Source: Syncephalis fuscata S228
Lineage: Eukaryota > Fungi > Zoopagomycota
NCBI GenBank assembly: GCA_025786725.1
Contig: JAHLTZ010000046.1
Location: 86,202 to 150,201, forward strand
Direction: 5' to 3'
Length of the DNA stretch: 64,000 nucleotides
This document shows, one piece after another, positions 6,098 to 47,980 of this stretch. The notes beneath the pieces were generated by a model that saw only the letters and a program-made list of their open reading frames with translations, had not been told where the DNA came from and searched no databases. The position numbers were made by a program, and so were the translations under genes. Numbering within the stretch: the first letter of the stretch is position 1; each line of letters begins with the position of its first letter.

Positions 6098-8119
6098 TTA
6101 GTGAAAATACCAACGTAGCATACGTGGCCATGTATTTTGAAAAATCAATTGGAGTATTTCGTAACGAGCTAGTTCAAAGTCCTTAAGCGTTAATCGATTT
6201 TGTCGATAAGCATTTGTCAGGTCCCTGCGACATTCAAATGTAATATTGATTTCATTGCGTGATGATGGACTGATAAAGTCCTCATAAATTAAATTAATTT
6301 CTCTATCTAATATATCTTTTGTTTTTGCACTCATTGGTGGCCTTGTTGCTTCGTGTTCTTCTAATATTTCGTCAATTGAGCTAATCGAGCCACTGTGAGT
6401 ATTGGCAGCAGATAATGAAGGTCTAACCGGATGGCTCGTGTTGTCACGAGGTGATAAGCTATTTTGAATAGATACTTTTGATAATTTAGTAAATGGCTGG
6501 CAATTAGCAATAAACATACCTTGCTGTAAGGGTCTACCGTGATTTCTATATATTGGATGATGCATAAGTTCACCATAGTATGGTATATAATTTTCGGCAC
6601 GATTATGAACCAAAATTTGGTCTAAAAAACGTAATCTTCGCAAAAATACCATATTTTCAATTGTGAATTCACGCATGGAATATTGGTACAACTGTACAAT
6701 TATTAGATTCAATTAAATAAAGTATGAGTACAATAATTGACTTACTGCTAGTTGTATTTCCCTATAATCTATTGTCTCCATAAACACTTCAAAGTCACTA
6801 ATGTCGCCTGAGGTTCTATTTGATACTATATTTTTTACCGTTTTTTTAGCTTGATGTTGTTGTTTACGTAAAATACGCCGTTCATAATACAAATATCCCA
6901 TTGGCCAGGTAAAGGACATTATATGACTAAAGAATAGCAATATTTCAAGCAATATTTCTACAGGAAATGCTCTACGAGCTTTAATCCAGGCAGGACTATC
7001 GATGTAGCGAATCAAAAAAAATGGAGTCATGCAAAGTATTCCTGCTAAATATTGAAAAATAAATTCGTTGCGAATACCATAGGCATCTGTTACATTCCAC
7101 ACAATAATTCCAATAGCGGGAAAAATGATGCCGAAAAAAGCGCCAATCACAATGTTAAGAAAATCAAATGGCCATTTACTACCGCAGAAGAATAATGCTG
7201 GATGCATCTTAATTGAAAACAAAGGTTCCAGTAAAATGACCATAACAACATACATGGCAGTGAAAAATGTAATAACAAAAACTACATATACATGATATTG
7301 TGGCTGTAAAACTTGTATCCCTGCTATGTATTTTACAAAACGCTGAAATGGTGTAATTTTATCTTGCCACGCCAATTTCGATGGTCTTATGTTTCCATTT
7401 TGTGACTTATGGCGTCCAAGTAAAACGTCCCACCAAGGCCTACGTGGTCTAGGCCCTATTGTATTGGATAAAGGCAAAATCTCAATGGCCGTACTTGGAA
7501 CTGGTAACTCAGTATCATCACGAAACATTCTGGGTAATGCCAAAGGTGAATTATCTGTTTGTTTTGTGCAAATATTGCCAGCCTTTACAGTGCAGTTTCC
7601 AACTCCAAACCATGTTGCCCGTCTAGCATGTCGTCTTGCACGTGTGGCTAATTGCTCATCTGCTGATGTAGGTAGCGGTAACAGTTCTGGATTATATTCT
7701 CTCAATGCATCTAGTGAGCTGCGTCGAATTTCAGTTCTTCTTATTTGTTCTTTTTCAAATAAGTGTCGATTGATTTCATAAAGCCACATTAGTCGCCAAA
7801 ATTTAAGGCTCAAACTTGTTGTCCAAAGGGCCAATCCAAGTGCTACCATTGAAAAAAAGACAGTGCAAGGATAAACAGGACGGTTCTGCAGTGCAACAAA
7901 CGTATTAGTTGTAATAATGGCGCTACCTAGCACATGAGTAACAGCCAGAAATCTACCACGATAACGTATTGCTTGTTCTTTTTGGGATAAAATTAAAAAA
8001 ACAAGCAAATCTATAATAAATAGTCCATTGATCACTCCACATAGAGTATAAAAAAGTGGTGCATTGTCAAAGATCGTCCCACGAGGCGTATGGACCACAT
8101 GATTCACAGTTGCGCTCAT
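6098..8119 (-). CDS. 7TM-RGS receptor, copy 2
   Basis: Direct paralogue of copy 1 at a 5616-bp offset; intron 6692-6745; RGS motif EFTIENMVFL; ATG at 8119 aligns with the copy 1 start. Confidence 0.85.
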
Positions 8120-39090: not shown

Positions 39091-40641
39091 ATGCTGAAAA
39101 TACATTCATTACTATGTCGCGTGCAGCGCAATGGCGTTTCTCAAAATATCCAAAGCAGAGCCAATTTATTTGAATTTAACAGAACGCTATATCCATGCAA
39201 TGGAGTGACACGGCGTTGGACTAGTAAAGTATGTTTATAAACATATTATTTATGATTTTTTAGTACTAACTTCAAGCACTTATAGCACAGCGGATTGTCG
39301 GATATCTGGGCTCTAGATATTGAAGGTGGCCGTGGTGGTGATGGATGTGTAAGTTTTGAACGTTCGGGCGGTAGTGCTACACGAGGAGGATCGCTGCGTA
39401 ATTTTGGTCGTCCATCCGGTGGCGACGGAGGTCGAGGCGGCGATGTGTGGATTGAAGCTAGCAGTGATGTTAGCGATCTTGGTAGTGTTGCTACGCCATT
39501 GTTACGTGGTTCACGCGGCCAATCAGGTCGAGGAGATATGGTGCGTGGCAAAGATGCAGAGGACACTGTGGTTCGCGTGCCTATAGGCACTGTTGTGCGT
39601 CGGTTTCCACCGACTGTACACGAACCAGACGACATAGAAAAGGAACTTACCAACACCAGGCCGCATACCAGTTATCACGATAAAAAAGCGTTAACAGAGG
39701 AGGAAGAGGAGGTATCCAGCGAAGATTTACGACCATATTATGTCTACTACCCCGGATGGGAGGATCGTGGTGAGATATTTGAGTGGGAAAGACGGGCCGC
39801 ACGTACGCAACAAGGTCGACGATTGCTTGAACATATTGGTCGACGATCACCAAGAAAAATAGCCACTAAATCAACAGATGAAGATGAAGCACTTTCTACA
39901 GTGGTAGACGTCTATGATATGCTGACACCTGGTCAGCGCATATTGGCGGCTACAGGTGGTCAAGGAGGTCATGGCAATCGATGGTTTGCCATGCGAGATC
40001 GACCACCAGCAAAGTTTGCATCACGTGGACTTGTTGGTGAACAGTGTCGATTAGAATTAGAGTTGAAACAGTTGGCGCAGGTAGGATTGGTAGGTGCGCC
40101 CAACGTTGGTAAATCAACACTTTTACGTGCAATCACGCGTGCAAAACCAGAAGTGGCAGACTATGCGTTTACTACACTTCGACCGGGTATCGGTGTACTT
40201 GAATTTGAAGACGGTCTACAGATAAGAATTGCGGATATTCCAGGACTAATCGAAGGCGCTGCACAGGATCGGGGATTGGGTCTAACATTTCTGCGCCATG
40301 TAGAGCGCACTCGCCTACTGCTGTTTATTGTTGATCTGACATCGGATGAACCGTGGTGCGGCCTTGAAACGCTGATACATGAACTGACGGCATATAAATC
40401 AGATTTGCTGCAGCGACCCGCATTGCTTATTGGGAATAAAGCAGACGCACCTGGTGCCAAACAGAATTGGGATCGATGGTGGCGACCACTAGCAATGTCA
40501 AAATCGATTATAGATGATTTGCCAAAGGAGCTGGCGCCAATACAACTTAATGGCGTGATGGCAATATCAGCACTTGAGCAGAAAAACGTCGAACGATTAG
40601 CACGTCAAATACGCCAGCTAGTAACCATGGACCAATCGTAA
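39091..40641 (+). CDS. MTG2: Mitochondrial Obg-family GTPase (Mtg2/GTPBP5-like)
   Basis: Basic presequence-like exon 39091-39229, intron 39230-39285; Gly-rich Obg fold (GGRGGDG, PSGGDGGRGGDV, GGQGGHGN), G1 GAPNVGKS, YAFTTLRP, DIPGLIEGA, NKAD, ISA. Confidence 0.85.
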
Positions 40642-41082: not shown

Positions 41083-41255
41083 CTATTTGCCTGGAGTACG
41101 TGGTATATTGTAAAACACACAGTTAGTAAAAAACAGTCATACAAAAATAAAGTGCACAGCTTACCACCACGACCAGGAACTGGCTTAGCATTTGCCGTAG
41201 CCATAACTACTAAAAGAACTGCGGCAGCAGCACAGACAGTGACGAAAAGCTTCAT
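41083..41255 (-). CDS. 32-aa secreted prepeptide MKLFVTVCAAAAVLLVVMATANA-KPVPGRGGK
   Basis: Exon 1 is 41165-41255 (91 nt); phase-1 intron 41091-41164 with GTAAGC donor, perfect TACTAAC branch and first downstream AG (CAG); exon 2 is GC AAA TAG; TATA-like ATTTAAATA about 80 nt upstream. Confidence 0.7.
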
Positions 41256-44147: not shown

Positions 44148-45963
44148 TATGATAATGATTGCAAGTTTAAAAGTTGTGCGTAGTTATTGGTGCGTTTATT
44201 CGCTTAATCAGATAGCTGTAATCAATAAAATAAAATAGTAGTGTAAGTTGCTGGAGAAGCTATAGCTTTGTTGGGATGCTGGATCAACTATTGGCCAGAT
44301 AAATTGCTGTGTATTTATACTCAATCTTGTAGTAGCATCTGCTAAGATGTGTTTTATGGTTATAATTATGGCCAAGAGTATTCTTATTTTCTAAGTCCTG
44401 AGTAGTGTAATAAACAACGTCTCCGACCACGCCATGCTAAAACATAACAGTCCTTAATAGCATAAGATTTAATGTTTCAGGTAAACAACCAGTTATCACA
44501 TTTTTATCAAAGCCACACTTTTGCATATTATATTGCCACAATTTGCTAATAGTATTTATGTGTTATAGTTATATCGTTTATTCTTGGTATTAATGATCTT
44601 TTGCCAACAAATATATCAACACACCAACTAATGTGCTATATTGTAAAATTGGTTTATTAATTATTGCATATTGCACGTTTTATATTCTTGCAGGATACAA
44701 GTTTGCACTCATTTTATTGCAGTAAAGTTTTGATCCAACTTTCGCGGTACTGGTTTGAATTTTCATGCTTTGTTATACTTACTGATTATAATCTATTGGT
44801 TTCATTAAACCGTACTAGGACCAACTCCTATGAAATTATTCCGGCTATGTTTAGCACAATACTGCCATAGTTAGATGTTATTGATTTAAAGGTAGCTGTC
44901 CTTATTATGCATGCATTTGCTCAAGACATTGTAATAGACCAATAAACAAATGATTAGACCAATAAACTGGTATTTTATAACTATGAAGGTTCCACGTGCA
45001 ATGCAAACACAATATAACGATTGATTGCAATAGATTCAATTACTACAATGTGGTTATTGGTTTTATTGATTTAATAACAAATTTATTTTTTATTAACCAC
45101 TAATCATCATAGTTTAATTATAATAAACTGAATAATTGTATGATACCAAATAGAAATAAAATGGAAGTAAAAGTTTATTGTCTTCATTGATATAGAATAA
45201 AGCTACAATTATATAGTAAGTATAGCTAGTAATGAAGCTTGAGCATTTTGTAGTATCTCATCATTAATGCAGCATATCAGTTCATGTGTCTGCTCATATG
45301 CTCACAGCCAATAAATAGCTACTCGCCATATTGTTTTAATAGTCGCTTGTTTTTCAGTAATTAGTGTTGATATTCGATATAAGTACATATCATTATCATC
45401 TGTTTAATCAAATAATGCATTTTTAGTCACACCATTAAATATAACAGTATTAAACTTAAAGTTGTAGTGTCTGTGTTGTGAAATTACGTATGGCTAGATT
45501 GTATAATAAGACGGCAATGTCAAGCTATGTTAAATGTAGCTATACACAATTTACATTATAGCTATTGCCAATTGATGAGTACCATCGTACCAACATCAAT
45601 ATAGGCCCTCACCAATCATATAGTAATAATAATAATAATGATAATAGATTTGCTAATATTTATTAGTTGCTGATACAAATAGAACATGAATATAGGTGCG
45701 ACAACTTAATTACATATAGCTAAATTAAGTCATTTCATTACTACAATTTTTGCATATTTGAATAGACACAGATAAATCAAATCGTTAGTAATGTAATAGT
45801 AACATTGGTGGAAAAATCAATAAGTGGAGTATTGGATATGGCTTGATATGAATGAGCTAAACGCAGTTCTTGAATGATTTTGATTTTTTTAAATATATAC
45901 CTAAAATATATTGAGCTAGCAGTTAATTTGCACCACCAATGCTATTTTTAAAAGCACCAGTCA

Positions 45964-46938
45964 TTCTATGTTTGTAAATAAATATAGCGCATGCTACATT
46001 AGTGTATAGGTCATCAATATATAATATTACTTACAAGCTGTTTATAACGTTGTTAATATATAGTGCGTAGCATTTAGTTGGTATATAAACTAATCATGCA
46101 AATTGCTACTTACCACCTATTAGTATAAGTTATCAAACACACAAAATACGTAGCATCTGTTTAATAAATAGTTAGTTAATATAGATTGCTACTTATGAAC
46201 TGTTGGCGATAGATACTAAGTGTCCATAGTGTATAATATATGATTAGTATATTGTTAATAATATGCGGTATGGCTTACTGTCTATTAATATCAAATTATT
46301 AAACGTGCAATGCATAGTATATTTTTAGTGCATAGCTAAATAATACAAGATTTTACTTACGAGCTATTAATGTTAAATCAATAAAACACCCGGTAAATAT
46401 AATATGATTAGTACATGATTAGTCAGCAAGGTCTTACTTACGAACTATCAGTATTAAGTTGTTGATAAACACAGCAATAGCATACCATTAATGTATGGTC
46501 AATAATATACAATGTCACTTACAATCTATTAATATTAGGTTGTTAATATGCACAATAAATAGCATGTAATTAATGTATATTTTGTTAATATACAATTTCA
46601 CCTACCAGCTATAATAGTGTATTATTAATATGCGTAGTACACAGTTTGTAATTAGTGGGTAGCCAAACAATATACAATTTGAATTACTTCCTATTAGTAC
46701 AAGTTTTAAACACACGCAACGTATGGAATATAATTAAAGCATAGCTAATCAATATACAATACAACTTACGAGCTATCAATGTTAGTTTGAGAATAAAAGT
46801 AATATTTAATTAAATGAGTAATTAGTTATTGTGATTGTAACATATTACGACGAATTAAACTAGCTTAGTATACACTATGGCTATATTAAGCACAAAAGCC
46901 ACGACAATGGTACAGACGACGGCAACAGAAAGCTTCAT
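45964..46938 (-). CDS. Micro-exon secreted-peptide gene: signal-peptide exon plus ten 3-nt exons (in-frame TAA in exon 1 as assembled)
   Basis: Exon 1 is 46849-46938 (MKLSVAVVCTIVVAFVLNIAIVYTKLV*). Micro-exons at 46770-72, 46688-90, 46606-08, 46523-25, 46442-44, 46361-63, 46279-81, 46197-99, 46114-16 and 46035-37, each flanked by YAG and GTAAGT-like sites, with introns of 76-80 nt. Confidence 0.7.
46029..46848. repeat. Degenerate ~81-bp tandem array (intron + 3-nt exon unit), ten units
   Basis: Recurrent plus-strand motif AATATACAAT...ACTTAC-NNN-CTAT(T/C)AAT(A/G)TTA at a period of 79-83 nt. Confidence 0.85.
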
Positions 46939-47980
46939 GGTGATATTGATTTGTTATAAGCAGCAATTAGAATAAGCAATGGAATGTGTTTGCTACAAAA
47001 TAAACAATAACGAGTAGTTGACGGCAATTAGAGTGCAATAACGATATCGCGGATTACTTGTGTGTATTATGCGGGCTATTTAAATTTATGATTACGCTGA
47101 AATAGCAACATGACTTATTGTATGGGAGATACAATTAATGTGTAGTATGAACCAACAATAGCAATGACATCACACTGTCTTTGTTCTCTTTTTTTCAAAC
47201 TTTCAATGACAACGTTTGCATACTCCATGAACAAAAGCCATAAATTATATTACTGTAACATTAATGTGTTATAAGATATTTTTGCACAATATGTTTTATT
47301 GTTTGTAAACAAGTTGTCACTTCTTGAACCATAAAACATACTTATTGCTTTATTTGTGCGCTCAGTTTGATGTTGTAGCTACTGTTACAGGAACGAACAA
47401 CATGCTTAATCCACAAAGGCATTATGTCTAAGCATAAATTTGTACATTGTATACTATTGTTGAAATATCAGATGGCCATTGGTCGAGATTCATATGGAAT
47501 GGGCATTGTAATAAACAATATTCGTAATGTAGTGTATCACAACACTTTCAACAATAAACATTTCAGTCTTATTGATGTCACTGGTTAGGCAATTGTAGTG
47601 TAATCTGCATTTGAAAGACTATATGCGATACAATGTGTAGACGCTAGGCTAGGTATATCAAGCAGTTCCAGCCATATACTATTATCTTTGAACATATAAT
47701 GGTAGTGAATTGCATCTCAGCCAGTGATTACACAAAGCCTAATTGATTCCAGATGCCTCTAAAACAATCCTAACATCACATCACAGAATATTGCTTACAA
47801 AATAATAAACAAAAGTAGCAACCACTGAAAAAGCAATTTGATTTTACTAAGACAAGATAGCCATTACTTTTATTGTTCATTTAAGAGGCGAGTTTTGTAA
47901 AGAATCATCAATTTTATTAAAGAATAGGTTGATTAACTTCTTTCTCCTCTATTTTTCTTCAACACACATACGTACACAAG

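Follow-up and report, generated by a model that had tools for sequence, protein, structure and literature searches.

Among the closest described systems are the nank genes of the truffle Tuber melanosporum, NLR genes with tens of codon-sized, alternatively spliced microexons (Iotti 2012, PMID 22289772, as described in PMC4986451, PMC3689799, PMC13449251 and PMC10197012, which cite it). The schistosome micro-exon genes (MEGs) comprise 35 Schistosomatidae-specific genes with exons mostly of 6-81 bp (often 15), introns of 0.1-5 kb and isoforms produced by exon skipping (bioRxiv 10.1101/2023.06.21.545858). In Coprinopsis cinerea, long reads show the splicing of exons of 1-3 nt, but the 3-nt exons are scattered, 27 in 26 genes, and form no arrays (PMC12230235).

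The locus presented here lies in a window of 64,000 nt, the whole stretch of DNA that was analysed, from Syncephalis fuscata S228 (contig JAHLTZ010000046.1, positions 86,202-150,201). Syncephalis belongs to the Zoopagomycota and is a parasite of other fungi, mainly Mucorales. Like the nank genes, as the citing papers portray them, those of S. fuscata form an expanded fungal family with tens of consecutive 3-bp exons and canonical spliceosomal introns, whose products diversify rapidly and have a link to biotic interaction. An earlier reading made from the sequence alone knew of no described fungal array made up solely of 3-nt exons; judged by the same secondary accounts, the Tuber genes are such a precedent. 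However, the nank products are there described as intracellular NLR-type receptors of an ascomycete that are diversified by alternative splicing, whereas in S. fuscata, a member of the Zoopagomycota, the array codes for the whole mature portion of a small secreted peptide and is read in phase 1; here selection appears to favour full inclusion, with diversification in the DNA. The NACHT and ankyrin domains of nank proteins are not a feature of the S. fuscata products, and a Pfam search of six annotated family proteins gave neither a NACHT or ankyrin domain nor an informative match for the hairpin peptide. With the MEGs the family shares secretion by a parasite, a conserved signal peptide followed by short frame-neutral exons in multiples of three, and a tendency to be missed by automatic annotation. 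It differs from them in its 3-nt exons, its mutually homologous introns of about 78 nt, its size of about 200 genes and its fungal genome. The S. fuscata system thus works like the nank and MEG genes in architecture and belongs to neither family. The literature that was searched, most subscription journals lying outside it, holds no account of such genes in Syncephalis.

Our main reading, to which we assign a probability of about 0.72, is that the gene in the window is old and probably decayed, and belongs to a large, constitutively spliced family of 3-nt-exon genes whose diversity is held mainly in the DNA. The features of the gene, all on the minus strand, are as follows.

46939..47158 (-), 5' flank (promoter and 5' UTR), from family-wide homology by blastn
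46846..46938 (-), exon 1, signal peptide and pro-region ending RR, from homology to paralogue leader exons
46773..46845 (-), intron 1 (73 nt), homologous donor ATATGT against GTATGT in the family, cryptic GT at 46848
46770..46772 (-), micro-exon 1, CTC
46688..46690 (-), micro-exon 2, GAA, with the weaker donor GTAATT
46606..46608 (-), micro-exon 3, CTG
46523..46525 (-), micro-exon 4, ATT
46442..46444 (-), micro-exon 5, TTC
46361..46363 (-), micro-exon 6, CTC
46279..46281 (-), micro-exon 7, ACA
46197..46199 (-), micro-exon 8, TTC, with an AT donor, probably dead
46114..46116 (-), micro-exon 9, GTG
46035..46037 (-), micro-exon 10, CTT
45966..46034 (-), terminal intron (69 nt), acceptor typical of the family
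45671..45965 (-), terminal exon, which finishes the stop codon, then the family-conserved 3' flank

The sequence-only reading had placed ten triplets on the minus strand, each directly preceded by YAG and separated by introns of 76-80 nt, and all of them were found where it put them. Its observation that the splice signals are kept while the triplets vary also holds: the acceptor AG is invariant in 10 of 10 units, the donor columns count G9 T10 A10 A9 G9 T9, and the triplet columns are the least conserved positions across the units (4, 8 and 4 of 10). The strict motif YAG-NNN-GTRAGY occurs 7 times in the array against 0.018 expected from 5,000 Markov simulations, in none of which were more than 2 motifs seen. 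The flanks are related to those of most array genes and of an intronless paralogue, with blastn identities of 66-77% upstream and of 65-69% over about 280 nt downstream. The earlier reading was also correct in setting the terminal acceptor at 45966 and in forming the stop codon across the last junction, and the interpretation as a signal-peptide gene read in phase 1 is borne out by the family. The sequence evidence supports the view that the array consists of putative spliceosomal micro-exons of a secreted-peptide gene in this phase.

The model of exon 1 requires revision. The one-base break in it had been recognized, but homology ends the exon at 46846 (93 nt) rather than at a donor at 46848. 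The latter is a cryptic GT near the homologous donor at 46845, which reads AT in this gene; 17 paralogues have GTATGT at this point against ATATGT here. The neighbouring gene at 41255, which had been taken as the paralogous model, is only a distant relative without an array, and the true paralogues are located on other contigs. This leader relative (41165-41255, minus strand) has 30% identity and one ordinary intron, and is annotated as a read-through ORF of 105 aa, P0139. The window also contains the 3' portion of an Obg-family GTPase gene (39541-40641, plus strand), whose product is identical to a known S. fuscata protein, and at the GTPase-syntenic loci of other Syncephalis, the only loci to which this applies, no array was seen. 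At 1320-1342 and 6936-6958, about 5.6 kb apart, the same short tandem repeat occurs with the same motif spacing, suggesting a local duplication.

A lack of intact homologous arrays elsewhere had been named, together with a transcript result, as a ground for giving up the interpretation, and a scan of the same genome for periodic arrays had been proposed. A genome-wide search with a two-unit motif gave 3,247 matches, against 1 for the reversed control. At least 136 relatives of the leader exon were found, and 22 other arrays were modelled from 20 loci. Where recovered in these models, the leader exon is 91-115 nt long and codes for a signal peptide with a pro-region whose last residues are usually RR; every one ends in phase 1. 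Behind it come about 5-42 exons of 3 nt, with mutually homologous introns of about 78 nt (60-90 nt). The modelled exons are 3 nt long in 549 of 566 cases and 6 nt in 10. The recurring 6-nt type has a shorter acceptor, ATTAG, and usually stands just before a Cys codon (L038, L041, L042, L043, L047, L049); one such exon has the sequence that other genes split between two 3-nt exons, and may reflect the loss or gain of a single intron. Scaled roughly from a sample that favours long arrays, in an assembly that contains duplicate contigs, the family would comprise about 200 genes and 5,000 exons. Most of these array genes appear to have been missed by annotation.

Six annotated proteins (P0127, P0130, P0134, P0136, P0138, P0140) carry the same leader ahead of unrelated mature parts, one of which contains a von Willebrand C-like domain. 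Because one leader heads such different products, leader and promoter can be regarded as a shared cassette. Among the named family matches of the leader-profile searches only S. fuscata proteins were present, a search with P0137 returned P0137 itself, and a comparison by features gave no Atlas match. The queries for searching and folding were exon 1 or annotated intronless proteins; spliced models were compared locally only.

In phase 1 each codon spans an intron, and an exon completes one codon with two bases and opens the following codon with its third. Selection on these junction codons is evident. No stop is found among 436 of them, against 21.6±3.6 expected when the exon order is shuffled (0 of 2,000 shuffles), while Cys codons number 66 against 34.6±4.3, and the mutual information across the intron reaches z=11. 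Genome-wide, T joined to AA or AG across an intron occurs 9 times against about 130 expected, and the control, C joined to AR, 108 times against about 83. Phase 2 shows no effect on stops or Cys. A whole codon per exon, phase 0, is ruled out since the leaders end in phase 1 and selection at the junctions is confined to phase 1; phase 0 also holds stops. The stop codon of the array is often completed by the terminal exon.

These results are also important for the question of whether the array is coding at all. A non-coding 81-bp minisatellite with a chance likeness to splice sites would account for units that are tandem and similar, to which Tandem Repeats Finder assigns an 82-bp period in the window, and some metagenome matches are indeed monotonous satellites. 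It would leave unexplained the avoidance of stops and the formation of cysteines across gaps of 78 nt, the agreement between leader phase and terminal stop, and the intronless paralogues with the same junction sequence. Such a minisatellite is highly improbable for the window array. At the family level it is refuted by the junction statistics, which reveal a coding constraint linking adjacent units.

The predicted products are mostly 28-46 residues long, with disulfide-patterned skeletons such as C-2-C-3-C-n-C-3-C-n-C; shorter products with two cysteines or none are also present. The mature peptide would be released by a Kex2-type cut after RR, and modelling suggests that it is most often a helical hairpin with 4-6 cysteines. 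One early fold model reached no more than pLDDT 62, but a two-helix hairpin was obtained with pLDDT 85 for the mature portion of P0137. In the models, many paralogues have a CxxxC spacing and a predicted two-helix hairpin that resemble those of the plant alpha-hairpinins, or vicilin-buried peptides. Luffin P1, BWI-2c, VBP-8, VBP-10 and nigellin-1.1 are among the top 50 of a structure search with Z-scores of 4.9-5.6, which are no higher than those of generic helix pairs. Unlike alpha-hairpinins, many S. fuscata members have six cysteines, the family gives no sequence or Pfam match to them, and the window copy is Cys-free. Secretion, the cysteine pattern, the expansion of the family and the lifestyle of the fungus together suggest an effector or antimicrobial role of these peptides in mycoparasitism.

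The diversity of the products could arise by splicing or in the DNA. The earlier reading had proposed that exon skipping could give up to 2^10 isoforms, and combinatorial skipping as the principal diversifier would follow the example of the schistosome MEGs and the Tuber nank genes. Every exon is frame-neutral, none of the 1,024 inclusion patterns of the window copy holds an internal stop, and alternative splicing is reported for nank genes in the accounts available (PMC4986451, PMC3689799, PMC13449251, PMC10197012). Across the family, however, junctions made by skipping one exon contain 22 stops against 20.5 by chance, and those made by skipping two contain 23 against 19.2. In addition, 107 of 408 single skips would cost a cysteine, and the intronless paralogues carry full Cys skeletons. 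Since the skip junctions are not purged of stops and a quarter of the single skips lose a Cys, full inclusion appears to be the selected product. Skipping as the main source of diversity is therefore unlikely, and this genomic proxy argues against frequent functional skipping of microexons in S. fuscata. Unpurged stops would still be compatible with skipping plus decay of the bad products, and runs of ten to forty 3-nt exons may be spliced imperfectly.

Paralogues do differ by gain, loss and block exchange of whole units. The twins L031 and L032 differ by one, five and one whole units at an intron divergence of 1.2%, and a single duplicated unit separates L036 from L037. One near-identical block of 9 units is common to L050 and its neighbour, whose arrays are otherwise divergent. 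Pairs of introns with at least 90% identity show a difference of 7%, as against 60-70% of positions in their exons. A unit consists of a one-codon exon and an intron, and the introns are alike; whole codons can thus be gained, lost or swapped without a frameshift. The simplest mechanism would be unequal exchange between similar introns, in which each step moves the equivalent of one codon and leaves the frame intact.

The main reading can be put together from these elements. All the exons behind the leader would normally be spliced in, in order and in phase 1, and cleavage after RR would yield the mature Cys hairpin. Unequal crossing-over and conversion between similar introns would add, delete or swap whole codons with the frame kept, so that the diversity would lie mainly in the DNA of the roughly 200 paralogues and not in exon skipping. 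The intronless genes would have lost their introns through cDNA.

P0123, P0131 and P0137 are annotated proteins in which this leader precedes a Cys-rich mature part, and their coding sequences are contiguous in the genome; each of the three annotated Cys-rich family proteins that were mapped is intronless. Around the gene of P0123, homology persists over about 600 bp upstream and 800 bp downstream, with an identity of about 80%. Over six junctions, 23 of 24 nt agree between this gene and the joined exons of the array L047b, and the transition to the terminal exon also falls where the array predicts it. At the sequence level, these intronless paralogues confirm the predicted array junctions.

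In the flank trees P0123 is located inside a clade of young arrays with a support of 99-100 (combined and upstream flanks), and the window gene and other old arrays are found outside it. Loss of all introns via cDNA is favoured because the intronless copy nests among young array genes, although the direction is statistically insecure: in the AU test a position outside the young clade was not rejected (p=0.26). A SINE-like element of about 400 bp in nine array introns (L040:3207-3604; also L031, L041, L043, L045, L047, L049) suggests, by its target duplications, that reverse transcription is active. In each case it is inserted in reverse orientation at one and the same site within the unit intron; its tail is A-rich, and the duplicated target measures about 15-17 nt. 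By eye its head is tRNA-like; ARAGORN and Rfam did not score it as a tRNA.

The opposite direction, with intronless genes ancestral and a mobile, introner-like intron invading every codon, must be weighed against the same data. Near-identical introns (94-96%) do sit at non-corresponding places in separate genes, between triplets that differ, as found within the S. fuscata array family in a survey of array-family loci, and the AU test is compatible with an intronless copy outside the young clade. The nesting of that copy in the young clade with older array genes outside, the copying of exon and intron together in recent gains, and the strict 3-nt spacing, not expected from independent insertions, make such an invasion quite improbable.

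The window copy itself differs from its relatives in several ways. Its exon 1 has 93 nt, as compared with 94 or 97 nt in phase-1 paralogue exons, and contains the one-base break in codon 28 with an in-frame TAA at 46855-46857. Two of its donors are changed from GT to AT, one after exon 1 (46845) and one, absent from the list of the earlier reading, after the TTC at 46197-46199. In the other modelled genes only 1 donor of 566 is AT, the remaining 565 being GT or GC. Its introns are of a more decayed type with 57% mutual identity, it lies on a long branch, and it encodes no cysteine. With X at the break, the product reads leader-X-IRR followed by eleven residues. The sequence thus indicates an old and divergent member of the family, which is probably decayed rather than working.

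A working copy would require that the break in exon 1 is an assembly error, that the GT at 46848 serves as donor and that exon 8 is skipped in frame; the product would then be a short Cys-free peptide. The break sits in a run of T, other copies have similar one-base breaks, and single-base breaks in several family copies could be errors of long-read assembly. Moreover, the junction codons of the window gene contain no stop, and other divergent members (L033, L048) are Cys-free as well. It is nevertheless rather doubtful that the gene and such a product are functional, given three lesions in one gene, two of them of a kind seen once in 566 donors elsewhere. The signal-cleavage region has also drifted: 26 codons hold 9 amino-acid changes from the consensus, though the same number is seen in L038.

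When metagenomes were scanned for three units in a row, at least 120 stretches were returned, and many of those listed have introns of fungal type and variable triplets. None of the contigs concerned was considered to be human. Between the S. fuscata unit and the metagenome arrays there is no real DNA similarity. Of the listed arrays, some form part of PNP_UDP-NACHT-ANK genes, and others continue into HET or kinase exons. One such gene, L091:2415-7816, contains two arrays of 3-nt exons between its ankyrin repeats and has the layout of Tuber nank, to the extent that the citing papers describe it. In L073, L079 and L133 the arrays are placed directly 5' of HET-domain exons, an arrangement of which no description was found in the literature searched. 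Seven AT-rich arrays (L063:90-2997, L057, L083, L088, L098, L107, L118) have 16-23% GC, a period of 90-100 nt and phase 1; in the AT-rich contigs phase-1 stops number 0 of 116 against 5.6±1.8. One of the seven leads into a protein-kinase exon, which we take to resemble Glomeromycotina kinases. Other metagenome contigs show few phase-0 stops and no junction signal. In L059:369-2824 an array of 34 units follows a first exon of two codons (Met-Lys), and its product is of low complexity. L058 and L096 are monotonous, with 33-45 identical GGA triplets, and are probably satellites unrelated to splicing; L096 adjoins long uninterrupted ORFs.

Judging from the metagenome scan, this architecture, described once in truffles, appears to be far more widespread. 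We propose, tentatively and at somewhat less than even odds, that codon-sized arrays are a recurrent and largely unannotated fungal device by which homologous recombination becomes single-codon editing, used in S. fuscata for about 200 secreted hairpins, of which a variant would occasionally be fixed as an intronless gene through cDNA, and likewise in unrelated NLR, HET and kinase arrays of other fungi. If the main reading is true, the S. fuscata family would represent an extreme gene structure, with one intron per amino acid along the whole mature peptide in about 200 genes. It would provide a natural test of how the spliceosome copes with many 3-nt exons in succession, and of how introns are gained by tandem duplication and lost via cDNA. 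For a mycoparasite, it would also mean a hidden store of peptides that are candidate effectors or antimicrobials.
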